Assembly: GCA_002269645.1 (NCBI GenBank) | Contig: NIVC01000614.1 | Location: 89,835 to 153,834, forward strand | DNA from: Macrostomum lignano | Taxonomy: Eukaryota | Length of the DNA: 64,000 bases | Direction: 5' to 3' | In this document: positions 1-51,523 of the stretch, piece by piece | How the letters are laid out: each line of letters begins with the position of its first letter | How positions within the stretch are numbered: the stretch's first letter is position 1 | Notes under the pieces: model-generated | What the model saw: only the letters and a program-made list of their open reading frames with translations | Told to the model about the DNA's origin: nothing | Database searches by the model: none | Program-made: the position numbers and the translations under genes

Positions 1-723
1 CTGTGTCTGCCTGTCTGTGTCTGTGTCTGCCTGTCTGTGTCTGTGTCTGCCTGTCTGTGTCTGTGTCTGTGTCTGTGTCTGCGTCTGCCTGTCTGTGTCT
101 GTGTCTGCCTGTCTGTGTCTGTGTCTGTGTCTGCCTGTCTGTGTCTGTGTCTGTGTCTTTGTCTGCCTGTCTGTGTCTGTGTCTGCGTCTGCCTGTCTGT
201 CTGTGTCTGCCTGTCTGTGTCTGTGTCTGTGTCTGTGTCTGCCTGTCTGTGTCTGTGTCTGCCTGTCTGTGTCTGTGTCTGCCTGTCTGTGTCTGTGTCT
301 GCCTGTCTGTGTCTGTGTCTGTGTCTGCGTCTGCCTGTCTGTGTCTGTGTCTGTCTGTCTGTGTCTGTGTCTGTGTCTGCCTGTCTGTGTCTGTGTCTGT
401 GTCTGTGTCTGTGTCTGCCTGTCTGTGTCTGTGTCTGCGTCTGCCTGTCTGTCTGTGTCTGCCTGTCTGTGTCTGCCTGTCTGTCTGTGTCTGCCTGTCT
501 GTGTCTGTGTCTGCGTCTGCCTGTCTGTCTGTGTCTGCCTGTCTGTGTCTGTGTCTGTGTCTGTGTCTGCCTGTCTGTGTCTGTGTCTGCCTGTCTGTGT
601 CTGTGTCTGCCTGTCTGTGTCTGTGTCTGCCTGTCTGTGTCTGCCTGTCTGTGTCTGTGTCTGTGTCTGTCTGTGTCTGTGTCTGTCTGTGTCTGTGTCT
701 GCCTGTCTGTGTCTGTGTCGGCC

Positions 724-754
<31 letters not shown>

Positions 755-843
755 GTCCTTCCGTCTGTCTGTCTCTGTCTGTCTGTCTGTGTCTGTCTGT
801 CTGTCTGTCTGTCTCTCTGTCTGTCTGTCTGTCTGTCTGTGTC
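1..843. repeat. Compound microsatellite built of GTCT / GTGTCT / GCCT units
   Basis: Continuous low-complexity (CTGT/CTGTGT/CTGC)n from base 1 to ~843. The three long ORFs over it (VCVCLS...) are repeat artefacts. Confidence 0.98.
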
Positions 844-1043
844 TACTAGTATCCATATATCTACTTACGATTATCTGGTATCGCAATTGGGTGTTACTCT
901 TCTCTCTTACTTTCTAGTAAGAGAGAAATGTAGTTATGAGCAAATGTAGTATGAACGATAAACTAGCTATGGAAAAGCCACACTCTTCTCTTCATCCTTC
1001 TCTAGATTTCCATCTTACTCTCCCTCGCTTCCCCTCACCGCAG

Positions 1044-3105: not shown

Positions 3106-6100
3106 CTACTCAAATGAGGCCATAAAGTGAGATTGGCCATGCAGCTACTCAAATGAGGCCATGAAGTGAGATTGGCCATGCAGCTACTCAAATGAGGCCA
3201 TGAAATGAGATTGGCCATGCAGCTACTCAAATGAGATTGGCCATGCAGCTACTCAAATGAGGCCATGAAGTGAGATTGGCCATGCAGCTACTCAAATGAG
3301 GCCATGAAGTGAGATTGGCCATGCAGCTACTCAAATGAGGCCATGAAGTGAGATTGGCCATGCAGCTACTCAAATGAGGCCATGAAGTGAGATTGGCCAT
3401 GCAGCTACTCAAATGAGGCCATGAAGTGAGATTGGCCATGCAGCTACTCAAATGAGATTGGCCATGCAGCTACTCAAATGAGGCCATGAAGTGAGATTGG
3501 CCATGCAGCTACTCAAATGAGGCCATGAAGTGAGATTGGCCATGCAGCTACTCAAATGAGGCCATAAAATGAGATTGGCCATGCAGCTACTCAAATGAGG
3601 CCATGAAATGAGATTGGCCATGCAGCTACTCAAATGAGATTGGCCATGCAGCTACTCAAATGAGGCCATGAAGTGAGATTGGCCATGCAGCTACTCAAAT
3701 GAGGCCATGAAGTGAGATTGGCCATGCAGCTACTCAAATGAGGCCATAAAATGAGATTGGCCATGCAGCTACTCAAATGAGGCCATGAAATGAGATTGGC
3801 CATGCAGCTACTCAAATAAGGCCATGAAGTGAGATTGGCCATGCAGCTACTCAAATGAGGCCATGAAGTGAGATTGGCCATGCAGCTACTCAAATGAGGC
3901 CATGAAATGAGATTGGCCATGCAGCTACTCAAATGAGGCCATGAAGTGAGATTGGCCATGCAGCTACTCAAATGAGGCCATGAAGTGAGATTGGCCATGC
4001 AGCTACTCAAATGAGGCCATGAAGTGAGATTGGCCATGCAGCTACTCAAATGAGGCCATGAAGTGAGATTGGCCATGCAGCTACTCAAATGAGGCCATGA
4101 AGTGAGATTGGCCATGCAGCTACTCAAATGAGGCCATGAAATGAGATTGGCCATGCAGCTACTCAAATGAGGCCATGAAGTGAGATTGGCCATGCAGCTA
4201 CCCAAATGAGGCCATGAAATGAGATTGGCCATGCAGCTACTCAAATGAGGCCATGAAGTGAGATTGGCCATGCAGCTACTCAAATGAGGCCATGAAGTGA
4301 GATTGGCCATGCAGCTACTCAAATGAGGCCATGAAATGAGATTGGCCATGCAGCTACTCAAATGAGGCCATGAAATGAGATTGGCCATGCAGCTACCCAA
4401 ATGAGGCCATGAAATGAGATTGGCCATGCAGCTACTCAAATGAGGCCATGAAATGAGATTGGCCATGCAGCTACTCAAATGAGGCCATGAAATGAGATTG
4501 GCCATGCAGCTACTCAAATGAGGCCATGAAGTGAGATTGGCCATGCAGCTACTCAAATGAGGCCATGAAGTGAGATTGGCCATGCAGCTACTCAAATGAG
4601 GCCATGAAGTGAGATTGGCCATGCAGCTACTCAAATGAGGCCATGAAGTGAGATTGGCCATGCAGCTACTCAAATGAGGCCATGAAATGAGATTGGCCAT
4701 GCAGCTACTCAAATGAGGCCATGAAGTGAGATTGGCCATGCAGCTACCCAAATGAGGCCATGAAATGAGATTGGCCATGCAGCTACTCAAATGAGGCCAT
4801 GAAGTGAGATTGGCCATGCAGCTACTCAAATGAGGCCATGAAGTGAGATTGGCCATGCAGCTACTCAAATGAGGCCATGAAATGAGATTGGCCATGCAGC
4901 TACTCAATTGAGGCCATGAAGTGAGATTGGCCATGCAGCTACCCAAATGAGGCCATGAAATGAGATTGGCCATGCAGCTACTCAAATGAGGCCATGAAGT
5001 GAGATTGGCCATGCAGCTACCCAAATGAGGCCATGAAATGAGATTGGCCATGCAGCTACTCAAATGAGGCCATGAAGTGAGATTGGCCATGCAGCTACCC
5101 AAATGAGGCCATGAAATGAGATTGGCCATGCAGCTACTCAAATGAGGCCATGAAATGAGATTGGCCATGCAGCTACTCAAATGAGGCCATGAAATGAGAT
5201 TGGCCATGCAGCTACTCAAATGAGGCCATGAAATGAGATTGGCCATGCAGCTACTCAAATGAGGCCATGAAATGAGATTGGCCATGCAGCTACTCAAATG
5301 AGGCCATGAAGTGAGATTGGCCATGCAGCTACCCAAATGAGGCCATGAAATGAGATTGGCCATGCAGCTACTCAAATGAGGCCATGAAGTGAGATTGGCC
5401 ATGCAGCTACTCAAATGAGGCCATGAAGTGAGATTGGCCATGCAGCTACTCAAATGAGGCCATGAAATGAGATTGGCCATGCAGCTACTCAAATGAGGCC
5501 ATGAAGTGAGATTGGCCATGCAGCTACCCAAATGAGGCCATGAAATGAGATTGGCCATGCAGCTACTCAAATGAGGCCATGAAGTGAGATTGGCCATGCA
5601 GCTACCCAAATGAGGCCATGAAATGAGATTGGCCATGCAGCTACTCAAATGAGGCCATGAAGTGAGATTGGCCATGCAGCTACCCAAATGAGGCCATGAA
5701 ATGAGATTGGCCATGCAGCTACCCAAATGAGGCCATGAAATGAGATTGGCCATGCAGCTACTCAAATGAGGCCATGAAGTGAGATTGGCCATGCAGCTAC
5801 TCAAATGAGGCCATGAAATGAGATTGGCCATGCAGCTACTCAAATGAGGCCATGAAGTGAGATTTGCCATGCAGCTACTCAAATGAGGCCATGAAGTGAG
5901 ATTGGCCATGCAGCTACCCAAATGAGGCCATGAAATGAGATTGGCCATGCAGCTACTCAAATGAGGCCATGAAGTGAGATTGGCCATGCAGCTACTCAAA
6001 TGAGGCCATGAAGTGAGATTGGCCATGCAGCTACTCAAATGAGGCCATGAAATGAGATTGGCCATGCAGCTACCCAAATGAGGCCATGAAATGAGATTGG

Positions 6101-6218
6101 CCATGCAGCTACTCAAATGAGGCCATGAAGTGAGATTGGCCATGCAGCTACTCAAATGAGATTGGCCATGCAGCTACTCAAATGAGGCCATGAAGTGAGA
6201 TTGGCCATGCAGCTACTC
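3106..6218. repeat. 39-bp minisatellite, ~80 copies (CTACTCAAATGAGGCCATGAAGTGAGATTGGCCATGCAG)
   Basis: Near-perfect tandem units with a few recurrent SNPs (gaag/gaaa, tact/tacc). 25-bp deletion units occur near 3230, 3450, 3632 and 6155. Confidence 0.98.
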
Positions 6219-6501
6219 TTTACTGCTTAGCATTCGAGGAATTAATTGTTCTCAGGTGCAGAGAAGCAATAAAACTAGAAATGAATGCAATGCTGCTCGT
6301 TTATAAAAAATGTAGCCATTTTTGTCACACAACGATGGTTATACAGTAGATAATATAAAACCGAATTCCAGTCAGCACAGTTTTATTATCCTTGCATGAT
6401 GCTCGGGCGGACCTTTGCTTTGTATATATACGGTAAAGTTGGTTGAGAGTTTATAGTAGGCAATTTTATTTTGCCGAGTAAGGTGAGTTCGTCAAGCCGT
6501 C

Positions 6502-9350: not shown

Positions 9351-11875
9351 TTAAGCACAGAGATCAATACCGAACAGGTGTTTCAAGCGGTCCCTAGCGC
9401 CGATTAACGCAGTCTCAATGTCCCGTTGAAGCGACTTCATGGATTGATCCTCAATCATTTCACCAGCTGCCCAGTGTCGATAGTGATGCAGCAAGCCTTC
9501 GCTAATGGGGCTCAGCTGTTTAGTTTGGCAGCTCTGCCACGAGTTCCACACAAAATGTATGCCAATCTCTTTGATCTGACGAGCTACTACGAGTAGTTTG
9601 CTACGCTCAGTGAATGGTAGAATAGATTTGATGCGTCGCCTGCGCAATAAGCTGACAATCTGTTGAAAAGAGTTAAGGGGGGGGGGGCTGTACTTAACAG
9701 CTAGTTTTAGTGGAATGATGATAAACGGCTTGTACAGTGTACAGGGGCGTCGCCATGGATTTTATGGTGGGGGACAAAGTCAAGAATTCTACATTTACAA
9801 CCGTAAATATCATTTTTAGAATCGGTTGTCAGCGTTCAGCGCTCATTTTAGCGCCACAGGCACTCATTTTAGCGCCGCAGGAACTCATTTTAGCGCCACA
9901 GGCACTCATTTTAGAGCCGCAGGCACTCATTTTAGCGCCACAGGCACTCATTTTGGCGCCGCAGGCACTCATTTTAGCGCCCAGGCACTCATTTTAGCGC
10001 CGCAGGCACTCATTTTAGCGCCACAGGCACTCATTTTGGCGCCGCAGGCACTCATTTTAGCGCCCAGGCACTCATTTTAGCGCCGCAGGAACTCATTTTT
10101 GGCGCCGCAGACACTCATTTTAGCGTTGCAGGTGCTATATTTTGTCGCCCTGAAGCAAAATTACTAATTTCCATAACGGAACACAAAGTTGGGGTGGAGG
10201 GGACACAGCATTGGTATGCCCCCTCATATCTTTTACTGGAGGACATGTCCCCCTGTCCAACCCCCCTCCCCCCGGTGGCGACGCCCCTAAGCTTGTTTCA
10301 ACGGAAAGTCGCATTCCATCTCTAGAGCAGTCTTGTTTGTTACCTTTCGCTAGAGCAAAACTCTAAACTCTTGCTTTTGATAGAAGGCAGACTCAATGTT
10401 CATCTTTTGATATGGCGAACCTTTCTTATAGCTCTATCGATATTCATTAAGATTTTCGTTTAGACAATTAGGATACACCTCCTATCATAGGAGGATAAAC
10501 CTCCTATCTTCGTAATGTATTTTTTCGCCCCTTTCCCGCCCCTCTACTTGAGTAGTCTGCTTTGTCTATAGGAGAGTTTACCATTTTGAAATGGCGTTTA
10601 AAATAACCGCTGAAAGAAAAGTCAAATGCGCAACCGCGTACCTTGCAGCCAATAAGCGAGGTCGGCATTTTAATTTCGCCACTTTTCTCCTGCTTCGGCG
10701 ATGGAGGAAACACGCCGTGACGAAATCCCAGAGCACAGTTACCGCCTCGATCATCTAGTGAGTGCAACTGTGCCGCTTTAACCAGATTAATAGCCTCGCC
10801 TTTGCTATTAGTTGGCACTAACATTTCGTCAATGTCAATGAACGTCAACAGTCTGTATCTGTCTCGGGCAGAGTACAAGCAATCGTTGAGAATAACCATC
10901 TGGCCATAATAGTGAATGTCCTTGTCTAAATCAATTCCCTCCGCCAAGGACCACGGGGTCACCGTGATCCAGCCAATACCGATATAGTGCTTCATCACTG
11001 CACTAATTTTACTAGGCAGACTCATATTGTAGAAGTAGAAATGCTCAACACCCAGCAGTCTATTGACCTCAATGAATTCCACTAGACGCATTATAAACTG
11101 ATTTTCGCTCTCCTCGCTGGGTAAATAGCGCAGGGCTGTGATACAAGCGGCAACTTTATCTGCCGGTTTCGATGACTCAGCAACATGTACAGGCAGTTTA
11201 ATCTTGCCAGATGCCCTGTTGGATACATCGACACCGTTCACTTCTACAAGATAAGACGACTCTGTTGGTACAACTGGACAGAAGTACAGCACACCATCGT
11301 ATGGCATATAATGACCTTCGTGCATTGAGTAACCAACAGCTTGTTGCCATGGTCTTGCATCCAAGTTCGTTGATGACTTCAAGGAACTGAGTCTACAGGT
11401 GACGCGAGGCGGCTGTTTCGATAATCTATTGTTGAAATAGCCAACAAGTACTATCAAACCAAGCTGGAAATCGAATCTAGCTGAAAACAGAACCAATACA
11501 GGCTTGCCTACTAGTGAGAACACAGTTTGCGGACTGGGACTGCTAGCCTCTGTAGCAGTATGTACCGATGAACTAACATTTACTTGCGAATAGGACGAGC
11601 TCATCAAGGGACTACCGAAATAGTAGTCGTATGCCAAATAATGTCTGATAGGGTTGGCGTCTGCGGGATGAAAACCAGTTATTATAGACAGCAATTTGGA
11701 ATGTTTGCAACAGTATTAAGTAAGCAAGATGGAATTTATCGGACTTACCAAAATCCATCCATTTGTAAAAAACATAGCATGCCGCGGTGCATAGCAGACA
11801 GATTGCTATGACAAGGTACCGCCGGCATTTTAACGATATCATTAACTGAAATCGGTTCCGTTTGAGCCTTGGCAT
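9351..11875 (-). CDS. Glycosyltransferase family 92 / DUF23 type II membrane protein; exons 11875-11749, 11582-10642, 9659-9351
   Basis: N-terminal TM (RRYLVIAICLLCTAACYVFY). GT92-type motifs LVEFIEVNRLLGVEHFYFYN, HYYGQMVILNDCLY and DxD motif FIDIDE. The last exon supplies ERSKLLV...EIGIHFV...GLLHHYR. Donors gtaagt (11748) and gtacgc (10641) and acceptors caag/caacag have compatible phases (1 and 0). Confidence 0.88.
9743..10288. mobile_element. MITE-like non-autonomous element with 13-bp TIRs and an internal 21/20-bp tandem repeat
   Basis: AGGGGCGTCGCCA (9743-9755) and TGGCGACGCCCCT (10276-10288) are perfect inverted repeats. Internal (GCACTCATTTTAGCGCCACAG)n spans ~9838-10130. Lies in GT92 intron 2. 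Confidence 0.8.
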
Positions 11876-11963: not shown

Positions 11964-13593
11964 GATCAGTGAGATCTGGTAATGGAGTGGAGGATCAGTG
12001 AGACCTGGTAATGAGGTATCAATGAAATCTAGTAATGGAGGATCAGTGACATCAGGTAATGGGGTATCAATGAAATCTAGTAATGGAGCATCAGTGAGAT
12101 CAGGTAATGGGGTATTAATGAAATCTAGTAATGGAGGATCAGTGACATCAAGTAATGAGGTATCAATGAAATCTAGTAATGGAGCATCAGTGACATCAAG
12201 TAATGAGGTATCAATGAAATCTAGTAATGGAGCATCAGTGAGATCAGGTAATGGAGGATCAGTGAGATCAGGTAATGGAGCATCAGTGAGATCAGGTAAT
12301 GGAGCATCAGTGAGATCAGGTAATGGAGGATCAGTGAGATCAGGTAATGGAGGATCAGTGAGACCTGGTAATGAGGTATCAATGAAATCTAGTAATGGAG
12401 GATCAGTGAGATCTGGTAATGGGGTACCAATGAAATCTAGTAATGGAGCATCAGTGACATCAGGTAATGAGGTATCAATGAAATCTAGTAATGGAGCATC
12501 AGTGACATCAAGTAATGAGGTATCAATGAAATCTAGTAATGGAGCATCAGTGAGATCAGGTAATGGAGGATCAGTGAGATCAGGTAATGGAGCATCAGTG
12601 AGATCAGGTAATGGAGCATCAGTGAGATCAGGTAATGGAGCATCAGTGAGATCAGGTAATGGAGCATCAGTGAGATCAGGTAATGGAGGATCAGTGAGAT
12701 CAGGTAATGGGGTGGAGCATCAGTGAGATCAGGTAATGGAGGATCAGTGAGATCAGGTAATGGAGGATCAGTGAGATCAGGTAATGGAGGATCAGTGAGA
12801 TCAGGTAATGGAGGATCAGTGAGATCAGGTAATGGAGCATCAGTGAGATCAGGTAATGGAGGATCAGTGAGATCAGGTAATGGGGTGGAGCATCAGTGAG
12901 ATCAGGTAATGGAGGATCAGTGAGATCAGGTAATGGGGGATCAGTGAGATCAGGTAATGGAGCATCAGTGAGATCAGGTAATGGAGGATCAGTGAGATCA
13001 GGTAATGGGGTGGAGCATCAGTGAGATCTGGTAATGGAGGATCAGTGAGATCAGGTAATGGAGGATCAGTGAGATCAGGTAATGGAGGATCAGTGAGATC
13101 AGGTAATGGAGGATCAGTGAGATCAGGTAATGGGGTGGAGCATCAGTGAGATCTGGTAATGGAGGATCAGTGAGATCAGGTAATGGGGTGGAGCATCAGT
13201 GAGATCTGGTAATGGAGGATCAGTGAGATCAGGTAATGGAGGATCAGTGAGATCAGGTAATGGAGGATCAGTGAGATCAGGTCATGGGGTGGAGGATCAG
13301 TGAGATCAGGTAATGGGGTGGAAGATCAGTGAGATCAGGTAATGGAGGATCAGTGAGATCAGGTAATGGAGGATCAGTGAGATCAGGTCATGGGGTGGAG
13401 GATCAGTGAGATCAGGTAATGGGGTGGAAGATCAGTGAGATCTGGTAATGGAGGATCAGTGAGATCAGGTAATGGAGGATCAGTGAGATCAGGTAATGGG
13501 GTGGAGGATCAGTGAGATCAGGTAATGGAGGATCAGTGAGATCAGGTAATGGAGGATCAGTGAGATCAGGTAATGGAGCATCAGTGAGATCTG
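11964..13593. repeat. 24-bp minisatellite (GGAGGATCAGTGAGATCAGGTAAT) with an alternate 24-bp type and 29-bp variants
   Basis: Direct tandem reading. The left part alternates two unit types; the right part is homogeneous with GGGGT insertions. Confidence 0.97.
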
Positions 13594-14496: not shown

Positions 14497-17400
14497 TCAA
14501 GAATTGGACTCCGGCCCAATGACCAGGGCGGACATGGCAAATAGCAGAAAGATGACGCCACCGCACAGAGTCACAGTGCGCACCGAGATGCGCTGAGCAA
14601 TGAACCGACCGCCTAGAACGGCCAGTCCAGTGCACAGGGCGTGACCAAGCGTGCCGCCAACAATAACGCCAACTACATCGTCGCGAGCGGCAAGAATTAT
14701 TGTGGCAATCTGCGACCGGTCGCCCCATTCGGCAAGAAATGTAAGCGAAAACGATTCGATGAGCACTTTGTTGACGAAGCTATAAATGATAGACCGTCTG
14801 GGACTGCGTATGACCCCAGTCTCCATGTCCTGCTCAACTGAGGCAGTCTGAGATTTGCAATACTCTTCGTCGCGTTTCTTTAAATCGGCTTGAACCTCTT
14901 CGTATTCTTCCATGCCCTCGTCCGGTTTCATATAATAACCTTCGCGAAGCATCTTCAAGCCGAAGATGGCGAACAGGGCGCTACTGACGTAGTAGGTGAA
15001 CCAGCGAGGTATAACGGTGGTTGCGTAACCCAGCACAGCCGACAAGATAGTCATGGTGGCCAGTGCTAGGATAGCGCCAGCGAATACGATTAGACGAGAA
15101 TGACGCATCGCCATAATAGCCGCGATGAAGAACGTTTTATCGCCCAGTTCGGAAACTATGATGACAGACAAGCTGGCTACGAATGCGTGGATGAAGCCGA
15201 AACGGGAGGCTGAGGACTCCACGGTTGCGCTGGAGTCGCCTTTCAGGTATCGCTACAATTTGTGCGCGTGTGTGTGAAGGGGGAATTAGATTATGAATAT
15301 GAAATTTTTGTAAGCATCCGGTATTAGTGCCAGACGTTTTTTAATAGTTAATGCCCATAAATATTCATTTAAAAATTACCAAAATAATAAACTAGGCAAA
15401 ACAATTTCCAACCTTCAGCAAGGCCATTAAGCTGGCAACAAAATTCATTTTCGCATTCATTCTTTTTCATCCTTGGGCTCTTTGTGATCTACACCCATGA
15501 AGGCCTTACAATGAAAATTCTATAGGCCAAAAATATGATACACAAGCTTGGAATGCTCTTAGATCCCTGAGCTTAAGACCATTAAGTACTTCAACAGCAG
15601 AGTTTTGACACCACATACAAATTGTGGTCGAGTGGTAAGGACTAAAGTTAATATGAACGTTTTTACTTTCTAGTTGAGCTGCAAATCCATAGAACCAGGG
15701 ACTATAATCGGGTTGATTTGGTAGAAACTAAATTTAAGATAAATATTTTTATTTCCAATATAAGAGACGGGCTCCTAAGTCCCTAGAATTAGAAACTAAT
15801 ACAACAAAGATAGGAATGTTTGACACTACATACATGTGTATCTGGGTTCAACTTGGGGGAGGAGAAGCTAAAGTTAAGATAAATCTTTTGACTTTCAATA
15901 CAAGATAAGCTCTTAAGTCTATAAATAACATTATAGTGCAGTAATTTTTCCTAGCTATATGCATATTTGTTAAATGATTTGGAAATTCGTACACACATTA
16001 TTAGGATCTCTACTTTAATATTTTTTTTATATTTTAACACATTCTAGTTTGGAACTAATTTGATATAATTATGATATATACTTTATTTCATTTTAAGGCT
16101 TGGCTCCTCTTCAAATGATGACAACATAGCCAGCAACAACTTGATGCCAACTGATGATCCCAAGGTTGACTTTGGAGCCCTTTGTGCTGAAGTTATTGGC
16201 TCTGGTCCTAGAGAGACTACCAGTTAGAGCCATGTTCTCTGCAGGTTTATTATAGCAAATTTATCAGATAATATATTTGATATTTATTAGCCAATGAAAG
16301 AGTTGGATACCTATCTGGCTCAACCAAGTGTTGAATTTTGTATCAACCTTGCATACTTCTGGAGAGACTACTGGGCTTATAAACAAATTAAGAGTTTATT
16401 CTGCAAATTTTTTAGACCACCTACTATTAATATCCCAAGTGAGATGATTTTTGTCAATATGCTGGTCTTTCTCTACTCCAATTTACTACTACTCAATTAT
16501 AATTAAAAGTGCAACCACATTTGAAATCAAATCAGAAGCTTTCAAAAATGTAACTAGCATTTGAACTTTTTGGATATTAATTGTTATTTAATACTTAGTC
16601 TATCTTTAAAATTAAAGAAACTAATTAGCTAGGACTTTTTTAAATTATAGTTGCAATTTCTATGCATTTATACTTTTTATATTTTTATATCTAAACTTTA
16701 AAATTTACATATTGAGATCATACTAGAACTTTTACAATCTTGCACTATATGTTTTTATTAATATCATTGAAATTTACTAGCAATAAATAAGACAACAGAT
16801 GATAGCCCTTGTGTAGCAATAAATGCATAGTTAAAAGGTTTTTTTAATGGCACTCAAAAGATACTAAACAAAGCCTACAATTTAGTTATACACATTATAG
16901 TTATACAAAATGCATAACAAAGTTCATAGATTGCACTATATATAAGCTGTTAGTGCAATATACTGCATTTAAGGCATAGTATAACCTCCATATACATTTT
17001 ATCTATTTTATTATAATGTATTGAATTATTACTATAGCAAGCAGATTTTGTCAGTGAATATAACTATTTTGTGTAGTCTTTGTTTTACTATTTTTGAGCT
17101 ACTTTTTATATCCATATGTCAAAGGGCTAAACTTCTGTCTTTAATGATCATACTAACACCACCAAAGTTGTTGCAGGCATGTTTCCTATATGCTAGGAAA
17201 TCCCACAAACTGTCACCAAAGTTGACATAGGACTTAATTCTGTCCTCTAAGTTATCCCATTAAATGCCACGGAATTTGTACTAGGGGTGACTTCTCTTCT
17301 TTTAAATCCTAATGATTAAATAGTGATTTAATTCGATCTTTTGCAATGATCCTATTGCTGTTATTTATGTACTTTTACTAGTGGCACATGAATATACTTA

Positions 17401-24697: not shown

Positions 24698-27600
24698 ATG
24701 GCGGATGACATATCAAGTGGAAGCAGTGACGGCAGCCACAACGTCAGGGAGTTGACAATTGTAGACGTCGATGCGAACTTTGTTGGCGGCAGCTCTACCG
24801 AGCAAAGCCTCGCTGAAAAAAAGTCGTCAGCCCAGTTCCATCAGCGGGACGGTGAAGATGATGAAGCACAGCTGCCGAAACCCACTGAACTTCATCAATC
24901 TGGTCTGCATGTAAAATCCAATGCCGTCCTTCAACTGGACTGCGACAGTAGCGACTCAGAAGCCGAGTTGGACCAAGAAGACGGCACTACTATGAATGCT
25001 CGTGAGGATTCTTCAAGCGACTATCAAGATTCAACAGACGCTTCGCACAAGGCCGCAGAGCTGCTCTAAGAGTGTGCAGAGAAGGACTTTATGAGAAGAA
25101 TTATTCGTCTAGCAAAGGTTGGTAGATTCTCAGAAGCCAATGAACTGCTCATGCAAATACCCGATGACTTTTCGGGTCAGCATGTTCACGATAAAAGCAG
25201 ACGAACTGCAACTCACTATGCAGCGATGAGCACCGATGGAGAGTCCACATTGCTGCACATTCTGCGACTGTTCGGGTCTCGAGCTCTGCTCAAAGAAGAC
25301 TACAAGTCGGTCACGCCGCTCCACCTGTCGCTTGGTTGCCATTCTACTGGCACTGTGAGAAAAATTCTCTCTGACATCACAGATAGCGGTGAAATGGTTT
25401 CCAAACTGCTCAAGACGCTGAAGACGTCACGCAGAAACACCATAGCGCACTATGCCGCCTCAAACACAGAGCACCAGGACGTGCTGAGTCTGCTGGTTGA
25501 CTCAACACCCACCAGTTGCAGTGATCTGTTTGCTCCGAACTCCGCTGGACAAACAATGCTGCACATGTCGATTGAGAAGTTCAGTCCAGAGAGAATACCG
25601 GCTTTATTAGAGATTGGTCACACACGCAGTGGCTGTCTCACGAAGCATCTTAAAACGAAAGACCAACAGGGAAACTCCAGCATTCACTATGCTGCCATGC
25701 GAGGTGCAGACGAGGCTGTACTTCGGGCTTTTGAGTTTTTTCCAAAGAGTTTTCGGTGGAAAAATAACAAAAAGCAATCGGTGTTGCAGCTGGTGCTTCA
25801 AAACTGCAGAGTAGATACCATAAAACAAATGCTCAGGTTGTCTTCAGAGTTGCCTTTGAACCCGGAAGTTGCCCAAAGGTTTGGCCTGGTTGATTGGGAT
25901 GGAAACACGTGGATGCACTATGCCGCTATGAACGAAAATAATGATGACGCAATGTTTGCTGCCCTTGAGGACGCTGAGAGGCAGGCTATGAACAACGCCA
26001 TGTTAGATAAGCATAAAGCAGCACTGCTGAGAAATCTCAGATGCCCCTGCTGGTTAAACAACAAGTCAGAGACGGCATTACATCTGGCGTCGGTGCACTG
26101 CCAGCCAAGCGTGCTGTTGCGACTGCTGAATGCAATGAATACCGCATGCGTCAGCTTGCAGGACACTTCTGGAAACACGTGCATGCACTACATGGCCCAT
26201 AGGACAGACTGTTCAGAAGCACTTCTCACTGCACTCAGGATTTCTGGCTCAGAAGGCCTGTTGAAGCAGAACAAACTGGGTCAGACAGTGCTGCATTGCT
26301 TGGCACACCGTGAAGATGAGGCCACTCTATTGGAGCTGCTACCAGCTGCCAGGGTTGCTGTTCTCAAAGCCGCAGATGACGCAGGCAACACAGTATTGCA
26401 CCTCGCTATCTCGCGGGGCATGCTCACTTTCACTGATGCCGCTGTGAAGAAGCTCGCGAGTGACTGCATCTTCTGGCGAAATAACAAGCAGCAAACCGTG
26501 GCGCATCTTGCTTTCGCGAACGTCAAGTCTTACAATTTCATGAAGGAAAATTTCCTTGGCGAACTCGATAAGTCATTGAAATCCTTGGACGCATCAGGGA
26601 GAAACCCGCTTTTCTATGCGAGCTTCAACTGGAACGTGGCTGCACTCGAGGCTTTCAAATCAAGCGACGAAATGACTCGCGTTGACGCTGACGGGAACAC
26701 CCTGATGCACGCACTCTTCATGAACACTGCTGCAACCAGCGGCATAGAAGCCTTCATCAAATCGCTGAAGCTCATTGCCAAAGCCGGAGTAAATCCGGGA
26801 ACTGAGAACAGCATTTGTAAGACTTGTCTCCAAGTGTGCGAAATTCGAGAGAACTTGTTGAAGCAAATTTTAGAAGCGGCTGCGGACACCAACAATGTTG
26901 GAAAGCTGATCAAGGCGATGCTTCACAGCTCAACCGGGACGCATGCGGTTCATCTCGCTGCCACCAGGTACCGCTTGAAAGACTTTGTTGAGCCACTTGC
27001 CTGCTTATCTGGCATCGAAGCATCCGAACTGCTGTCACTGACAGTCTCGTCAGGAACTCACAGAGGAGCTTCTTGTCTTCACTTTGCGTGTCAAGCAGGT
27101 CACGAGGGCAACATCAAGTTTCTCATTGAAAAGGGCTTGTCGCTGTCCTCACCGACCCATGACGGACTCACACCGATCGACTTTGCCTGCAACAGTGGAA
27201 AGGATGGCGCAGTTGAGAAAGCATTTTTAAATGGCGGTGGTAGAAAGACAAACCTGCTGAGACTTTTGGACTTGCCAAAGCGAGCATTGGATCTGCCTGA
27301 TAGGGAGACGGCCAACAGAGTTCTGAGCTCCGTCAGTGTATCAGCGCGTGTCCCTAAGCAACATCAGAGAGCACTCTCAGGTGTAAACCTTCTTGTCACT
27401 TCCATTGAACTTGACGCACCTGAGATTCTGCGTAGTGCAATAAGCATGGGCTTCATCAGCCTGGAAACTGAGTACTTGGCTGCATCGATTTTACATCCTG
27501 AAAATCTTACTCAGGCAACAGAGATGTCCATCATTGAGACAGCGTTGTTTCTCAATAAATTCAAGATCATACCGGACCTAGTGCTCACAAGACAGTTCGA

Positions 27601-29605
27601 GCTAATTCCTACATGTCTGAAAGTGCTAGTTGAGCTCAAGCGAAAGTTGAAGGAGATTCCTGAGCAGCGCGAGGAGATTAAGGAACTGAGACAGAAGCTC
27701 AAATGCATCGCATTCAACGCTATTGATGAAATGTTTCGCAATGCCAGCGCCTATGAGCAGCAACTGCTCTTCGACTATATTTGCGGCCGGATGGAGCCAG
27801 AAAACAGCGGTCCACTTTTTACCTGTGCGCACCCGCTGCGGGGCATGTTTGGCGAGACTAAGAAAGATGCTATCGAGCCGTGCACAGTGCTGCGACTGCT
27901 GCTGGAAGCTGATTGTGACGAGCTGTTTGTCAGTGAGTGCATGACCAAGCTGGCCGACACGGAGTGGAAGAACCGGCACAGCAGCCTGACTAGGGATCTG
28001 CTGCCTAACGATGACAACGTCAAGAAGGATATCGGTATTATTTGGCTAGAGAGATATCCAGCTGCTTCACCTCGAGTAAAGTTTTTTTCTAACTTCCTCT
28101 CAGACGTGGCTATGCTCATTCTACTCACCCTGGTTAGTATAGGGACTCCACTGGCCAATGGGTTCGGCAGTTTGTATGAAACACTGTATATATTCGTTTT
28201 CTACGGAATTTCAACTTACGTCAAGTTATCGTTCCGTCTTCTAACCAGGTCTTCTCTGCCTTTCTCGAGCACCAACAGAGCATTCTCTTGGCTAGAAGTT
28301 GCTAATGCCGTTGTCATTGTTTTTGGCTGTGCAGGCGCGTTGGCTTTTAGACTTTACTACTTTAGAATGCTGGCAGCCACCTGCTTTCTTGTATGGGGAA
28401 TTCGACTGATTTCCTTCTTGACATTCTTTGAGAAGACGGGGCCCATGGTTATGATGCTGGTTCAACTGCTACTTCAGGACCTGCTACCGTTTCTGTCAAT
28501 CATCCTGATTGTGATATATTCCTTCGGGATTTTCTTCTTTCACCTGCTGTTCCCTGTTCCCGCGGGAGCGAACTACTGGCTGTCGCTTGTCCAGGTATTT
28601 ACGCTACCTCTGAAGCTAATGTTCACAAATTTCGATAGGATTCAGTTCAAAAGCGTGAACAGTACCAATCTGACTGGGTATGAAATCGGCTCCATGGCCT
28701 ATGACAAAGGCAGTGATGCGTTCTACAACTGCTTCATGTTTGTATTCCTTCTGCTGGTCAACATCGTCATGGTTAATCTGCTGATTGCACTGTTCAGCCT
28801 GAGAGTGAGCAAAATTGCCAGCAAGTCCAAGATAGTCTGGAGAAGAATGTACTTCGACATGCTGGTTGAGTGCAACCGGATGAGCGTAGTGCCATCGCCC
28901 CTCTATCTGGTCAATTCGATGTACTTCATTCTTCTTTCTGTGGCTTTGGCATTTCGAAGTGACCTACTGAAAATTTGGAAATGCGGCAAGAGAAGCGTAA
29001 GTGAAATACTTCCGTGCCATTGCAGGTTTCCATTGAAAACTATGAGAATTATAGCTATTACTAGTTGCTAGGTTCTCATATTTTACAGACGGAGCAATTT
29101 GGGTGACTTAAATGTCATAAATATCCGTATCATTTAGCCACGGGCAAAAATGATCCATTAGCCCACATTTTCCCAAGTTTGATTCTGCAATGAACAACAT
29201 AAAAATAGTATACCGTTCACTGAAAAGATATTAGCACCCTAATCAACATTTCAGAACTGGTGGCACAGCGAGACGAACTACCCAAAGGTGTACATCCAGT
29301 TCCTCAAGTTTCAAGCCAAACAGTTCCGACGGTTCGGCCGAAGAAATCTAACTCGTCGAATTGTCGACGCCAACAGCGACCCGGACGGAGTGCAGGCTCG
29401 CGCTGACAACAACTTTGCGGCTGTAAAGCGGGGCATCGATTCGCTGGACCGGACTCGGTCGGCGGCGACTTCAAAGCGGTCAGATTTGAGGGGCATCGAA
29501 GCAAAGCTGGACAACCTGAAGCTGCAGTCGAAACGTCGACGAAAACAGATTAACGACATTGAAGCGAAGTTGGATCGGTTGATTCAACTGGTGGAAAGGC
29601 GCTGA
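24698..29605 (+). CDS. Ankyrin-repeat TRP cation channel (~18 ANK, 6 TM, TRP helix, coiled coil); exons ~24698-28996 and 29255-29605; in-frame TAA at 25067-25069
   Basis: About 18 ankyrin motifs (TATHYAA, TPLHLS, TVLHLAI...). S4-S5 linker RLISFLTFFEKTGPMVMMLVQLLLQDLLPF, S6 NIVMVNLLIALFS, TRP-box region SKIVWRRMYF...PSPLYLV. Donor agc|gtaagt at 28996 and acceptor tttcag|29255, both phase 0. C-terminal coiled coil IEAKLDNLKL...IEAKLDRLIQL. Confidence 0.92.
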
Positions 29606-36200: not shown

Positions 36201-38216
36201 TGATACAATGACCATTCTAACAACTTCGAACAAATTTAATCTGCAGTGCTGTTGTATGTTAGCAGAGAAGACACAGAGTATGCCCCCCAGCCCAATATTT
36301 TGTTGTCTAGGGCACAACCTATTATTTTATCATAAAGTAGTTACAAGATGAATCCCAAGAGGAGTTTGTATCAACCGGAGCAATGCGATAGCTCGAACCG
36401 CTTAAGCAAACCATTGCCTTCTTACTTAAATGTAGCAGCTCCACGTCGGAGCAGAAGACATAACAAGTGCTCTAAAATAGTATTTTTGAGAGAATTATTA
36501 AAATAATTAGCATAAGTTGAAGCCCACCGCTGTCTCACCCATCCACAGACCGAAGATGCCTCCAATTTCGCTGAGAGCCTCCGGCCAGTCGTAGCTGTAG
36601 TCCTCCATGTACACCGCGGCCCTCGGTGAGTCCGGCTTGATCCACACTCTAGCTACGTTAGTGATCAACTTGTGCTTTGACAAGCACCAGGCGTCTTCTA
36701 AACTGCTATTAAGACCACCAGGCTTGCAGGTTGCGTTGAAAAGGTTTTTAAGCACCGACTGTCCCCGACTCGAATTAGAACTGCCGAGCAGATGATGTAG
36801 TCTGGATGATTTGTATTCCTTCGGTTCAGTAAAGCGCGGCAGGACAATATAGTTGACAAAGTCGATTAGTTCGTCGTTTCTTGGCCAGGACACCTCAGTC
36901 TTTGTGGCATGCAGTTTCCAATTGTTGCATGGTGTGTAACCTTCCATGGTTTGCATTAGGTCGGCGGTCCGACTTTCCGCTTCCTGGTAGGCAGCATCGT
37001 GACAGTTCATCCGATCAAGCAGAGCTCGAGACGGTTCATGCCGTTCCCCATGCGGCGCAAACATGCACAAGGTCGACGTATTGTGACGAAACGGTAGCAG
37101 GTGCGAATAGCAGCTGCAGGTTTCGTACACCATGCGTTGCTTGGCCTCAATTACGGCTAGCGACTGCGTGAGACTGTAATTTTTAAACCCGACTCCCGTT
37201 GAATTATCTCCAAAGAACCGCACGTAGAGTATCTCATCTGGTGTCTTCTCCTGGCACACATGCTCCGGAGGGATGTTTAACGCGTTCACCTGCACCTCGG
37301 AGAACTCAATGGTTGTCGAGGCCCCACTCGAGATGTCATAAGCCAGGCCAGTTGTCATCGGGTGTTGGCCTTCTCGGTGGACAAAAATTCGCAGACCCTC
37401 AGCTTCCCAGCTGTTCCCGGTGAGAACCTGGTTCATGGTGCGATCACCGACGCTGAGATACTCCTCCAGGTCGTACGGCCGGTGCATTTCGTCATCTGCG
37501 CTTTTTTTACGCTCGTAAAGTGTCTGTTGGTTAAGTCGATCGTCATCAAAGTTTGAGTCGGTGAATAAAATTAACTTCAGTCCACTATTCTGATCGCTAC
37601 TGTCGATGCTTCTATCGCCGTTCGTTGGTAAAAACGTGTAGCAGTTCCAGTAGCGATTATGCTGGATCAGCTTTAGATTGTCGCTGTTGCACTGGCGACC
37701 TTTGTAGACGCACGAGAGCAGCATGTGCAGATCGCTCTGGCCAAAGTCGCGCGTGTCGTCCGTAGCCCAGAACACATCCATGTAGGTTTTGAACAGGTCT
37801 CTCTGGCGCAGCTTGTAATCGACTCGCGTCTCATTAAATCGTCGCTTTCGCTTCTCCGGTAGCCAGTTGCGAAAGAAATTCCAATTGTTCTCCAGGTGCT
37901 GGAAAAGCAGACTCCGCTCTGAGGGCGTATGAAGCAGCGTTTCTGACACTGGCTTCAAATTGCAAATTGTCACGTCGGGAAAAGTGGCCGAGACTCCCTC
38001 GTCTCTAAAGATACTGGTGATTGGCGACTCCAAGTAGTTAGAGATGGTTGCGTAGGTGTGGTAGAAGCAGGCCGCACACCCACCGAAGGTCAGGATCACC
38101 CAGAAGGCGCGTCGCCACGGATCCCCGCTCTGGTGCATGTGGCTGAGGCCATGGAGCGTAGAGCGCTGGCCGTAGTCGTGCAGCACGGAGACCGCCGCTT
38201 TCAGATTCGGGGGCAT
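33218..38216 (-). CDS. DEG/ENaC family sodium channel, FaNaC-like; exons 38216-36539 and 33621-33218
   Basis: N-terminal STLHGLSHM (HG motif), TM1 RRAFWVILTFGG, FPDVTICNL, YWNCYTF, Cys-rich thumb. TM2 LSEIGGIFGLWM|GISLLSVCEFVEL is joined across a phase-1 intron (g|gtgaga...ctgcag|gc) and carries the GxS filter. Poly-Q C-terminus. Confidence 0.93.
33842..34195 (+). mobile_element. Full-length tRNA-derived SINE with CORE-like central domain and (ATT)n tail
   Basis: A-box TAGCCTAGTGGT and B-box GGTTCGATTC, then TGTGTCCTTGAGCAAGACACTTAACTCTGCATTGCTTCAGTTCACCCAGCTGTAAAATGGG, which resembles the MIR/CORE consensus as I recall it. (TAT)n tail. Second copy at 19117-19362. Confidence 0.88.
34730..34964. 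mobile_element. MITE-like element with ~45-bp imperfect TIRs enclosing a 21-bp minisatellite (TTGTAGATTGGGCAGTTCACT)n, ~6-7 copies
   Basis: ATAATGCCTAGACCACGAGTGCGCT (34749-34773) versus AGCGCACTTGTGGTCTAGGCATTAT (34922-34946). Pairing extends outward to GCACGGCT/AGCCGTGC. Confidence 0.85.
35239..35323. mobile_element. 85-bp palindromic mini-element (CCATAGACATTTGGAGCGTGCAACA...TGTTGCACGCTCCAAATATGTCTATGG)
   Basis: Near-perfect ~25-bp inverted ends. A related end, CCATAGACATTCAAAGCATGCAACA, occurs at 36136. Confidence 0.75.
35408..36098. mobile_element. Fold-back MITE with ~250-bp near-identical TIRs, TA-flanked, Tc1/mariner-like termini
   Basis: Arms ~35408-35659 and ~35848-36098 are reverse complements with few mismatches. 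Ends are TA|CTGTCCGTCAAAAGTTCCGGAAC and GTTCCGGAACTTTTGACGGACAG|TA. Confidence 0.85.
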
Positions 38217-40117: not shown

Positions 40118-41936
40118 CTACTTGTCGCGCCAAGCGGCCTCGACCTCGCGCATAAGACTCAGGCAGGCCTCGTCCCGCCAAGGCAGAGCCGCGCACTGAA
40201 CGCTCACCGGCAGGCCTTCGCTGCCAGCCTGCATGCGCGCTACTGTCGCATGACTAACCGACCTGCCAGCGGGGTAGTTCGACATCGCTGCTACGTCGCT
40301 TGCGGTCACCCTGGTAACTGGCACGCTGCCAGCGGGGAAGTTAAACAAGTTGTAAAGTACCAGATAGCTTAAACAGCCGTTGAATGGTGACTTCGGCTCC
40401 AAATCAACTGCTGGACAGCCGAGCGCTGGACAAATAATAGCGTCGAGTTTATCTTCTCGCCAGCGGTGCGTGAATTCCTCGCGTAAACTGGTCACCTCTT
40501 GGTTGAAGTACCACATGCTCAACACGTTGGGCATTGGGACGCTCGACCTGAGCCATTCTTCGGTCTCAGAGTCACCTGTCAAACGGCACCATCGCTGACG
40601 GACCCATCTACCTGGCCAAGGTACCTGTAAATGAACAGCGGGTAGTCATGAAAAAGTGCATGAGGTGCTGTTCAAGACCTACAAAATCGAAGCCTACTTG
40701 AATCGCGTGCAGTCCTAGCTTGACAGCGTATGATACTCGATCACCGTTCAAAGCATCATCAAGTATGCCGGCGCCATCGCAGGTCACAGCGCGCAGGTAG
40801 GTCTCCATCAGGTTTAGTCGACGAATTGGCGGGTCCCAAGGTACCATTGTATGGCCCCGACTTGCCAGTCGATCAACTGTTTCTTTCACAGCCCGTTCAG
40901 CGCTCGGTACTGCCTGGAACTGGTGATCGTACAAGTAGAATCCAATTCGAAGGGGACGCGACTCAACATAGATGGTCTCATTGAAGCCCAGCGGCGGGAC
41001 GCCCGGATCAATTTGATCGTGCAATTCGCTGTTGCAGAAGGCCTTCATGAAGGTCGCAAGCGAAGCAACATCCGGTCCCATCGGGCCCCAAGACGCTGGC
41101 ACAAGTTTCTGAACGCTGACACTACGCTGTCCCTGACGCGACAGTCGCCCACTAGTCGGCTTGAATCCGGCGATGCCGCACCATGCCGCAGGCAGACGAA
41201 TGCTGCCTCCAATGTCGGAGCCGAGGCCTAACGGTGAACCGCCAGCGGCAATCAACGCCGCTTCACCGGAGCTGCTGCCACCAGGTGACCTATTCTCTGC
41301 TGTTGGGTGCTTCACCGCTCCCTCGATAGGGTTGTGGCTGAGTACACTCATCATCGTCTGAGGCACGCTGGTGCGGACAAAAGGCACACCACCTAGGGCT
41401 CGCAGGATTTTCACCGTGGAACAGTCCTCCGTTGGCAATGGTTTCTCAGCAAAGGCCGCCAGTCCAAAGCAGCTGTATTTACCCTTTACAGCCATGCTCT
41501 CCTTGATGCTGATTGGTAGACCTGCGAGTGGGCCGTCTAGATTGACTTCGGCCAGGTCCGGCTGCAAGAACTCGATGACGCAGTTCAGGTCGCGGTCAAC
41601 TTCGTAAGCTCTTGCCTGGTAAGCAAGTAGAACGCGTGCGGGATCCAGTGACTTGGCTCGCAGCCGACTCAGTAGCTCGCCGGTGCTTAGACTCAAAATT
41701 TCCGACTTCTCACTGTCTGTCAGCTGCTGTCGACGCACCTCCTCGTTAATGTGCTCGCCAAAGCGAGTCTTTGCCTCTCGATAGGCTGCCTGGAGACGAG
41801 AGCGAAGCGCGGACAGATGTCGCGAACGCCGCCAACGACGTACCAGTCGAGAGGCGCTTAATAACCCGACTGCGGTTGCTGCAACAGCAGCTGCCGTCAC
41901 CACTGACGAAGAAGTCACAGTTTCACCGCCGGGCAT
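40118..41936 (-). CDS. FAAH: Fatty acid amide hydrolase (amidase-signature family); exons 41936-40698 and 40624-40118
   Basis: PISIKES (catalytic Lys), GGSSSGEAALIAAGGSPLGLGSDIGGSIRLPAAWCG (Ser-cisSer), N-terminal hydrophobic anchor, and C-terminal GLPVSVQCAALPWRDEACL. The 73-nt intron gtaggc...tttacag is phase 0. Confidence 0.93.
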
Positions 41937-49985: not shown

Positions 49986-51523
49986 GTCGACTTATCGGTA
50001 AGTAATCGGCGAGTTGTACAATGGAGCAATGAGCTCTGTTGTATTCAAAATCCAATGGATGATTGGTTGTGCGACTGAGCTTCAGTTCAGGGTTGAACAA
50101 TGGCAGTGACAATTTTTTCCAGTTGTATTATATATTATAATTCAATCGCCCTCAAATCAGACAGGGGTGGTGAGTGAGCATGGGGCTCAGAAGCACTGTT
50201 TTGATCGGCAATATAGATTTTTGTCTAGGCTACTATAGCTATTAGCCTTTTTAGGCAGGCTGGTATTGGTCGCACTCGCTGCACTGACGAAACAGCAGCC
50301 TCCACTCCGCCATGGGTTTTCCTCGCCTTTGGGGGCGGCCACTGAACAACCGCTGGGGGGGGGAGGGGTAGTGGGGGTTGGTCCTCCAACCCGAAACCCC
50401 CGACGCCAACGTGCGTAGACTAAAAACCGGCGACCACCTCCCCTCAGACCCAGGCAGTCTCTCTGCCCCCTCTACCCCGCTCCTCGCCCCGACGGCCATC
50501 CAGGCCATTCCGCACTCTGCAGCTGCAGCTTAAGTGCGCGACAAGCGTCGAAAACAGGGCCCGGGGAGTGAGCTCACGTCGATCGATAGGAGAACAGCGG
50601 GCTTCAGTTCTCGTCTACGCTTCATGGGAAAGAGGTTGAACAGTTTCTGCCCGCTGCCATGGGACTGGGAGAGAGAATACAGCGGCTTTCTCTCTATCCC
50701 TCCTCTCCCCTTCTGATCCCCCCCCCCAGTGTGAAATCCTTCCGCTTCACTCTCCTCTCAATTCTGCTTCTTCTTTTACGATGCAACCGCTAAGAGAGTA
50801 TGGCTAACTCTCTAGGCTTTGATCCCCTCACAGCAGGTCATCTACCCGCCCCAAGAGACGCTGTCTGTACACCACCGTTTCGCTCTCTTCCTCTCTCCCC
50901 TCTCGATCCCGTCGTTGAAAAGAAATACAGAAATCTTTCTTTTTCAGCGGCGTTAGCAATAGAAAAGAATTAGACTTTACAATAAGTTCCGTTTCCCTCT
51001 CACTCTCTCTCTCTCTCTCCGAGTTCATTTGAAGGACGTTTTCTGCCAATGCTAAATCATATGATGGCGCTTGCTGAGAAAGAAAAATAAAAAAGCACGC
51101 GCGGCTATTATGACTATATAGAGGTTTAGTACTCTTTTAGAAGCAGAAAATATAAGTCCAGCAATGGGTGGGGAGTTCGCTAGTCAAGCTCTCTCCCTCG
51201 CCGTCTCCTGCTTCAAGTTTGCTCAACACTTGAGAGTTGCATTATTTTTAGTCTTGCAAAGCTTTATACGAGCTTAGGGCTGTATTTTGCACAGCCGCAG
51301 CAGGGCGCCCTCACCAAACAGTTCTACTCTTATTGTTTACCAAACCAAATTGTAAACAGCCCAGAGACCAACTGAAAACTTAGACTCAGAGCTATTCTAA
51401 GCTTCTATTTGAGCTCATTCGCTCTAAAATCATAACCGTAGCTTAATGTAATGAGTATAGTGTGAAAGTGTACATGTATGCATGTAAAGAGAGTTTTTCA
51501 TGTTTGAAATCTTTAGTGTCTTG

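Follow-up and report, generated by a model that had tools for sequence, protein, structure and literature searches.

Results

Gene structure at the locus

The DNA analysed here, referred to as the window, is a stretch of 64,000 nucleotides from the flatworm Macrostomum lignano (assembly GCA_002269645.1, contig NIVC01000614.1, positions 89,835 to 153,834 of the forward strand), and the gene with which this work deals lies on its + strand between window positions 25091 and 29605. We consider it likely that the product of this gene is a TRP-type cation channel, composed of an ankyrin solenoid, an MHR4-like linker, TRPM-type transmembrane (TM) helices S1-S6 with the TRP helix, and C-terminal helices, and that it belongs to the group of ankyrin-bearing 'TRPM-like' channels of flatworms. 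The parts of the gene and the other genes of the window are listed in Table 1.

The list of open reading frames (ORFs) contains an ATG-started ORF on the + strand (25091..29071), which unspliced corresponds to 1326 amino acids and whose final 25 codons are intronic read-through. An exact search of public assemblies for this unspliced product had no match. The spliced coding sequence (25091..28996 + 29255..29605) encodes 1418 amino acids, and its frame ends with the TGA at 29603..29605. A single large exon carries 92% of the coding sequence. Both splice sites conform to the consensus (donor AGC/GTAAGT after 28996, acceptor TTTCAG/ before 29255; the slash marks the exon boundary). The homologs P0003 and P0011 are continuous over the splice junction ('..NWW..YP..Y..FLKFQAKQFRRF'), where P0003 reads '..ENWWRDPKKYPEEYMDFLEFQANQLRRF' and P0011 reads '..STNWWYSQTDYPKVYTQFLKFQAKQFRRF'. 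All strings quoted in an earlier note, which had been written from the letters of the DNA (IIETALFLNK, LKCIAFNAIDEM, TVLRLLLEADCDELFVSECMTKLADTEW, GPMVMM, LLLQDLLPF, FLTF and PSPLYLV), were found.

A close paralog or homeolog of the gene is present elsewhere in the same assembly (locus L001; GCA_002269645.1, NIVC01000717.1, about 2892-8332). It shares 92% nucleotide identity with the window gene over 4.46 kb, and the 3' introns of the two genes coincide in position. The only annotation of L001 is a partial protein of 255 amino acids, P0011. The assembly sequence of L001 has a frameshift near codon 470. Comparison of the two copies over 1414 codons yielded a ratio of nonsynonymous to synonymous substitution rates (dN/dS) of 0.30 at a dS of 0.19, which indicates purifying selection. 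A chance ORF was rejected as an explanation, because chance falls far short of explaining an open frame of ~4 kb with a dN/dS of 0.30 relative to a paralog of 92% identity.

The window protein is 99.4% identical over 1251 aligned residues to P0014, a public M. lignano model (UniProt A0A1I8JIP8). That model is without three segments (79, 61 and 23 amino acids) and has a further 4-amino-acid gap, whereas the window ORF has these segments in frame. At least the second and the third segment are conserved in paralogs, and part of the pre-S1/S1 region is among the segments. A0A1I8JIP8 therefore appears to have lost coding sequence by splicing in the model, and the continuous ORF of the window looks like the better gene model.

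An acidic, Ser-rich ORF lies upstream in the same frame and is closed by a TAA. At this point P0014 and L001 read '...KAAE(L/V)LKECAEKDFMRRII...', with Lys at the position of the TAA of the window, and acidic N-terminal extensions are likewise present in paralogs such as P0017 and P0004. To judge from the reading frame, the product of the window copy would begin at Met 25091, unless the TAA is allelic or an error; the TAA may reflect a nonsense allele, a fault in the assembly or early loss of the extension.

Table 1. Features of the TRPM-like gene and of its neighbours (window positions)
Feature	Position	Strand	Remarks
Upstream same-frame ORF	24698..25069	+	123 codons, acidic, Ser-rich; ends with TAA 25067..25069
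Exon 1	25091..28996	+	1302 codons from the first ATG past the TAA; ankyrin array to post-TRP segment; GT donor at 28997
Intron	28997..29254	+	258 nucleotides, phase 0, GTAAGT...TTTCAG
Exon 2	29255..29605	+	116 codons + TGA; NWWHSETNYP, clade motif FLKFQAKQFRR, long C-terminal helices
Ankyrin-repeat solenoid	25196..27229	+	~18 repeats (residues ~36-713); Pfam, AlphaFold2, Foldseek
Helical linker	27230..28066	+	residues 714-992; motifs LLRLLDLPKRALDLPDR and LTRQFELIP; HHalign
Channel domain S1-S6	28067..28840	+	family profile, AlphaFold2, Foldseek
S4-S5 linker GPMVMML	28439..28459	+	
Pore helix and filter LPLKLMFTNFD	28604..28636	+	
S6 NIVMVNLLIALF	28760..28795	+	
TRP helix IVWRRMYFDMLVE and post-TRP PSPLYLV	28832..28912	+	aligns with TRPM 'IWKFQRYxLIxEY...PPPF'
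Clade motif FLKFQAKQFRR	29300..29332	+	instance of [FY]-L-x-[FY]-Q-[AS]-x-x-x-[RK]
Glycosyltransferase family 92	10504..11694	-	long single ORF
GDT1 (divalent cation/proton antiporter)	14497..15222	-	single ORF
ASC/DEG-ENaC channel	36507..38216	-	complete domain in one 568-amino-acid ORF; Pfam E=6e-48
Amidase	40608..41936	-	most of the domain in one long ORF

Ankyrin array and overall architecture

A Pfam scan of the window protein detected ankyrin families only (Ank_2 E=2.3e-31; Ank_2/3/4/5) and no TRPM-specific domain. In the AlphaFold2 model of residues 1-720 (predicted local distance difference test, pLDDT, 87.6; predicted template modelling score, pTM, 0.73) an N-terminal cap is followed by ~18 consecutive ankyrin-type helix pairs. 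These helix pairs and the Pfam Ank matches bear out the 'about 18 ankyrin repeats' counted earlier; counting with a regular expression for the ankyrin motif gave 15, one of them doubtful, which is an undercount relative to the structure model. Foldseek matched the model of residues 1-720 to the arrays of ankyrin-1, 24-repeat AnkB, NOMPC and 17-repeat fly TRPA1, and as far as can be judged from a model this is a generic likeness between long solenoids. PF18139 (LSDAT_euk, SLOG/MHR1-2) was absent from the window protein at E<=0.1, and ankyrin repeats fill the N-terminus.

In the model of residues 640-1418 (pLDDT 74.5, pTM 0.71) the end of the ankyrin array is followed by ~280 amino acids of helical linker, by six TM helices together with a pore helix, and by a long S6/TRP helix; two further long helices, at model residues 706-736 and 744-778, are C-terminal. 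The C-terminal helices, from about 29492, probably form a coiled coil. PF16519, a C-terminal coiled-coil tetramerisation helix, gave no match in the window protein, and a match to it is present in only 5 of the 37 canonical matches.

A TRPM-type channel core

When solved structures were searched with the single sequence, the best match of the TM/TRP region was TRPM3/TRPM1 (E ~2e-11). All PDB chains were then compared with a family profile made from ten members and extending from S1 to the post-TRP segment (alignment A4). Each of the best 60 distinct sequences was a TRPM and matched over profile positions ~1-305, with scores of 117 bits for TRPM2 (E 8e-33), 107 for TRPM3, 105 for TRPM1, 104 for TRPM4, 88 for TRPM7, 86 for TRPM5 and 73-78 for TRPM8. 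The same profile gave 23.6 bits with rat TRPV1, 9.8 bits with human TRPA1 and 7.2 bits with human TRPC6 (the TRPV1, TRPA1 and TRPC6 reference fragments were checked and are 100% identical to PDB chains). Foldseek led to the same family: the 50 PDB matches listed for the channel-module model were all TRPM3/4/7 (E ~7e-12 to 1e-9), with query TM-scores of 0.41-0.51 over 680-890 aligned columns, and neither TRPA nor TRPN was among these 50 structural neighbours. The TRPM-like character of linker and channel core, which had been proposed from the sequence, is thus upheld by the family profile (73-117 bits on every solved TRPM), by Foldseek and by HHalign (see below).

The likeness to canonical TRPMs (TRPM1-8) extends over the VSLD (voltage-sensor-like domain), the S4-S5 linker (GPxxxMxxxLxxDLxxF), the pore helix, S6 (NLLIA(L/M)F), the TRP helix (W-R/K-x-x-Y/R), the post-TRP PPP(L/F), the colinear MHR4-like linker and the fold of the module, and by score TRPM2, TRPM3/1 and TRPM4 are the canonical members closest to the window family. 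The differences are in the N-terminus, where canonical TRPMs have SLOG/MHR1-2 and the window protein has ~18 ankyrin repeats, in the lack of Pfam-detectable MHR3/4 or TRPM_tetra, and in the filter, where the canonical Gly-Glu/Gln is replaced by Thr-Asn. The selectivity filter of the window protein is F-T-N-F-D, that of the paralogs F-(T/G)-x-F-(D/E), and its acidic residue is conserved. The VSLD (S1-S4, 28067-28440) is the most divergent stretch of the window copy.

The TRPN-like features that had been noticed alongside the TRPM-like ones proved to be unspecific, since the TRPMs and the TRPC6 of the alignment have the post-TRP (S/P)PP(L/F) motif as well, and in the single-sequence search the channel domain of NOMPC scored 13.9 bits versus ~45 bits for whole-sequence TRPM3. 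Channels of the TRPS family (soromelastatin, ced-11-like), the sister family of TRPM, are SLOG-bearing and free of ankyrin repeats (PMC7306681), and the window protein, with ankyrin repeats and without SLOG, differs from this published architecture.

The helical linker

From its alignments, the linker between the ankyrin array and S1 is best described as a divergent (reduced) counterpart of TRPM MHR4 + pre-S1. PF25508 (TRPM2-like domain), which we take to be MHR3/4, was detected by Pfam neither in the window protein nor in four paralog linkers, even at E<=10. When the linker alone was compared with canonical TRPMs by HHalign, the result was not significant (E=0.08) and only the last MHR4 helix was found. 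The comparison with the TRPM_MCLZ-like clade (see below) placed the linker on residues 462-587 of P0052 with a probability of 94% (E=1.6e-7); P0052 is an ankyrin-bearing Macrostomum channel in which residues 381-574 are Pfam-significant PF25508. Linker and channel together aligned colinearly with the canonical TRPM profile from MHR4 onward (E=4e-38). The segments paired by HHalign include 'IIETALFLNKFKIIPDLVL' / 'DLFIWAILHNRLEMAKYFW', 'KCIAFNAIDEMFRN' / 'NEMALALLDEAYNN' and 'TVLRLLLEADCDELFVSECMTKLADTEWK' / 'ATCLQLATEAGNQRLFAHRAVQDLLNRMWW'. The impression that this region corresponds to MHR4/pre-S1 therefore holds, on the strength of the whole-module alignment and the P0052 match, although the region is very divergent.

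Homologs and the Macrostomum clade

Word-indexed searches returned only Macrostomum lignano proteins. An exhaustive profile search through 1.84 billion representatives gave 677 matches, ~25 of which span the whole profile including the linker; the named ones among these are all from M. lignano, and the other matches cover the channel part only. The clade of the window protein, clade B, consists of about 20 clusters at 50% identity, and wherever the source names a species this is M. lignano, with one exception (L002). That the gene belongs to a lineage-restricted (flatworm) group and is not an ortholog of NOMPC or TRPA1, as suggested before, agrees with this distribution. Outside the family there were 37 long matches, and these carry PF25508 in 35, the TRPM SLOG domain in 26 and ankyrin repeats in 7 cases.

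The exception is a contig of 5106 bp deposited in a Kangiellaceae metagenome-assembled genome (L002; GCA_036350755.1, JAZBNS010000602.1), which encodes a family-B ORF of 1537 amino acids. It has a GTAAGT...CAG intron of ~75 nucleotides at the conserved position of the family, followed by the second exon 'TQKWWRNADMDQYNEEYKDFLKYQAEILRK'. Judged by this gene structure, with its eukaryotic GT-AG intron, L002 almost certainly comes from a (flatworm-like) animal and was placed in a bacterial bin by mistake.

Relation to TRPM_MCLZ

A channel with a comparable domain order has been described in schistosomes. TRPM_MCLZ (Smp_333650), the target of meclonazepam, which was earlier labelled 'TRPM7-like', is encoded by three exons; ankyrin-like repeats occupy its long N-terminal region, and six TM helices, a TRP helix and helices at the C-terminus complete the protein (PMC10788528, PMC7138929). 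Meclonazepam acts at the VSLD (S1-S4) pocket of the channel and causes a rise in cytoplasmic Ca2+ and an inward current (PMC10788528). Unlike all other schistosome TRPM paralogs, TRPM_MCLZ is without MHR1/2/SLOG (PMC11731825). In a maximum-likelihood tree of flatworm TRP channels the TRPM_MCLZ clade adjoins the TRPMs and was named 'TRPM-like', and Clonorchis, Opisthorchis and Paragonimus have a duplication of exon 3, the exon that holds the channel domain in full (PMC12861061). A supplementary BLAST table gives strong matches of Smp_333650 in the free-living triclads Dendrocoelum and Schmidtea, and contains no identifier from Macrostomum.

Our homolog set contained a second clade of channels with ankyrin repeats and an Ion_trans domain, clade Z, in which parasite proteins are accompanied by five M. 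lignano paralogs (P0048, P0051, P0052, P0070 and P0134). The parasites represented are Opisthorchis (P0038, P0165, P0166), Schistocephalus (P0050), Dicrocoelium (P0060), Paragonimus, Hymenolepis, Echinostoma and two monogeneans. One cluster member of the Schistocephalus protein P0050 is labelled 'TRPM7' by its source. A homolog search seeded with the Dicrocoelium protein found Paragonimus, Hymenolepis, Echinostoma and monogenean orthologs and no Schistosoma sequence. The Opisthorchis viverrini models P0038/P0165 contain the linker-plus-channel part twice in tandem, which fits the published exons 3a/3b of TRPM_MCLZ fused into one prediction (PMC12861061). From the architecture, the taxon set and the exon-3 duplication we infer that the parasite part of clade Z is the TRPM_MCLZ orthogroup.

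A neighbour-joining (NJ) tree was calculated from 278 trimmed columns (S1 to post-TRP) of 79 sequences and rooted with TRPA1, TRPV1 and TRPC6; it contained no NOMPC, labelled TRPS or Smp_333650 sequence. The window protein and 13 paralogs formed clade B with a bootstrap support of 88-93%. Clade Z had 71-82%, its membership having been set after the tree was viewed (the initial definition had 0% support). Z was joined with TRPM in 20-29% of the replicates, and there was no well-supported order among B, Z and the SLOG-bearing TRPMs. A profile of clade B scored 131-142 bits with Z, 105 bits with canonical TRPMs and 16 bits with the outgroups.

The two ankyrin-bearing clades share a motif behind the TRP segment. 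The pattern [FY]-L-x-[FY]-Q-[AS]-x-x-x-[RK] is present in 13/13 members of B, in 5/6 Macrostomum members of Z and in at least 5/12 parasite members of Z, and in 0/38 of the remaining (canonical-TRPM-type) matches; other parasite members of Z have the near variant QSFALQ(N/D)RR. As a shared derived character, this motif favours a common origin of B and Z. Taken together, the separate clades and the common motif indicate that the window gene is a paralog of the TRPM_MCLZ type and not its ortholog.

In detail, the window protein resembles TRPM_MCLZ in having N-terminal ankyrin repeats in place of SLOG/MHR1-2, TRPM-type S1-S6 with the TRP helix, C-terminal helices, a small number of exons, one of which holds the complete channel domain, and a distribution restricted to flatworms; it also has the post-TRP motif Φ-L-x-Φ-Q-(A/S)-x-x-x-(R/K) in common with the putative TRPM_MCLZ-like clade. 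It differs from the TRPM_MCLZ type in its much longer ankyrin array (~18), in its shorter, Pfam-undetectable MHR3/4 region, in its F-T-N-F-D filter and in the expansion of its clade to about 20 paralog clusters in Macrostomum. Identity between the window protein and P0052, one of the Macrostomum Z members, is 16% (HHalign).

Neighbouring sequences

The ASC/DEG-ENaC gene, 7 kb downstream of the TRPM-like gene, is the second ion-channel gene of the window. To judge from the ORFs, the genes around the TRPM-like locus are intron-poor. Large minisatellite arrays occupy positions 3103-6218, 1-844, 11988-13591, 46841-47534 and 51523-51964; they include a 39-bp unit repeated ~75 times (95% matches) as well as arrays whose units measure 19-26 bp. 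The spurious long ORFs 3..949, 3630..6155 and 11998..12726 sit within such arrays. Positions 53897-56985 and 58477-61541 form a 3.1-kb direct duplication of 95% identity, with a spacing of ~4.6 kb. The stretch from 52 to 64 kb which holds this duplication has a strong positive GC skew and 30-bp repeats, and its minus-strand ORFs gave no Pfam match.

Discussion

The gene described here is an uncharacterised member of the ankyrin-bearing TRPM-like channels of flatworms and falls into a Macrostomum clade that is separate and has undergone strong expansion. In the earlier note the channel had been taken as a mixture of TRPM-like and TRPN-like features. The combination of ankyrin repeats with a TRPM-like core is indeed lineage-restricted, but it is not new, because the same architecture has been published for the flatworm channel TRPM_MCLZ (PMC10788528, PMC11731825, PMC12861061).

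Several observations weigh against this assignment. The window protein is without the canonical TRPM N-terminus, and Pfam detected neither PF25508 nor TRPM_tetra in it. In the alignment, S2 and S3 of the window copy are without the polar residues 'QE..D' and 'N.FD' that are kept by the paralogs. These are the positions of the Ca2+ site described for some TRPMs. With the polar residues missing, the window copy could be functionally altered, and its gating may differ from that of the paralogs. The TAA at 25067..25069 cuts the in-frame acidic N-terminal extension (24698..25066) of the window copy. Clades B and Z were joined in only 8-11% of the NJ replicates, B being basal with a support of 20-29%, and the link from Z to Smp_333650 was drawn from architecture, taxon set and exon-3 duplication.

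Clade B might be regarded as an ancient TRP family of its own, sister to TRPM (plus TRPS), which kept ancestral ankyrin repeats, never gained SLOG and survived only in flatworms. Such a history would agree with the rooted NJ tree, in which the window clade branches off first, then the TRPM_MCLZ-like clade and then the SLOG-bearing TRPMs, as well as with the missing SLOG domain and the failure to detect PF25508 in the window protein. However, the deep nodes of the tree have a support of only 20-29%, and long branches are expected to be pulled rootward. All named members are Platyhelminthes, so losses would be needed in every other phylum. Moreover, the Macrostomum members of Z have Pfam-detectable MHR3/4 (P0048 45.8 bits, P0052 29.3 bits), which points to descent from a true TRPM. 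Taking these points together, we consider a separate ancient family rather unlikely. Similarly doubtful is the view that B and the TRPM_MCLZ-like clades are early melastatin branches with an ankyrin N-terminus predating the SLOG fusion. If it were true, it would contradict the published ankyrin-free, SLOG-linked ancestor of TRPM and TRPS, and would allow the origin of the TRPM architecture to be studied in Macrostomum, which is a transgenic model.

It is also conceivable that the window copy is a decaying or non-functional duplicate, on its way to becoming a pseudogene within a genome of recent duplication. The TAA, in place of the Lys of the other assembly and of the paralog, removes the N-terminal extension, the S1-S4 region of the window copy diverges from the paralogs, and the nearest paralog locus, L001, carries a frameshift. 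Nevertheless, the rest of the frame (1418 codons) is intact with proper splice sites, an ATG comes 7 codons past the TAA, dN/dS is 0.30, and the stop, or the frameshift, could go back to the assembly or to allelic variation; on balance decay of the gene is unlikely.

Retroposition of a processed mRNA, which had been suggested in view of the single large exon and which the location of 92% of the coding sequence in one exon would fit, is very unlikely. The gene has an intron whose position is common to L001 and the distant family member L002, both of which also consist of one very large exon and a short 3' exon, there is no poly(A) tract after the stop codon, and at least two unrelated neighbours (the ASC channel and GDT1) are also encoded in one ORF. 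The gene of TRPM_MCLZ, too, is divided into only 3 exons, one of which encodes the channel domain (PMC12861061). The small number of introns is thus a property of the family and of the region and no sign of retroposition.

That the window protein is a very divergent TRPN (NOMPC) or TRPA whose TRPM likeness is convergent or superficial can hardly be maintained: a long N-terminal ankyrin solenoid before a six-TM TRP channel is common to NOMPC, TRPA1 and the window protein, its ~18 repeats are near the 17 of fly TRPA1, Foldseek superposes the predicted array on those of NOMPC and TRPA1, and in the single-sequence phmmer search fly TRPA1 (42.8 bits) came close to TRPM3 (45), but ankyrin arrays match one another generically, NOMPC has 29 repeats and its TM region scores 13.9 bits, the family profile drops TRPA1 to 9.8 bits against 73-117 for the TRPMs, TRPA1 is without the W-containing TRP box (W-R-R-M-Y in the window protein), the linker aligns with MHR4, and the 50 structural neighbours listed for the channel module include no TRPA or TRPN. 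A TRPN or TRPA identity was rejected on the basis of the TRPM-type core, as defined by family profile, linker and Foldseek.

As a member of the ankyrin-bearing TRPM-like channels, and judging from what is established for TRP channels, the product would be one subunit of a presumably tetrameric TRP-type cation channel. Cations would be conducted through the filter F-T-N-F-D, with the conserved acidic residue behind it, and the gate would be located in S6 (NIVMVNLLIALF). As in TRPMs, gating may depend on coupling of the VSLD to the gate, with S4-S5 linker and TRP helix (IVWRRMYFDMLVE) as the connection. The ankyrin array could be a cytoplasmic interaction or force-bearing module, with a docking platform or a NOMPC-like compliant element as candidates. 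One may speculate that the expansion of the clade reflects sensory diversification in a free-living meiofaunal animal.

For the annotation of M. lignano, the ORF of the window supplies three coding segments that are skipped in A0A1I8JIP8 and corrects this public gene model. Channels of the TRPM_MCLZ type, which are targets of anthelmintic drugs, have so far been known from parasites. M. lignano, which is free-living and genetically tractable, has relatives of the TRPM_MCLZ clade and in addition a second, about 20-fold expanded clade of the same design. It offers a non-parasitic laboratory system in which the role of an ankyrin array on a TRPM core, and the stimuli sensed by such channels, can be studied, and data on clade B bear on the question of whether ankyrin repeats replaced SLOG or preceded it.

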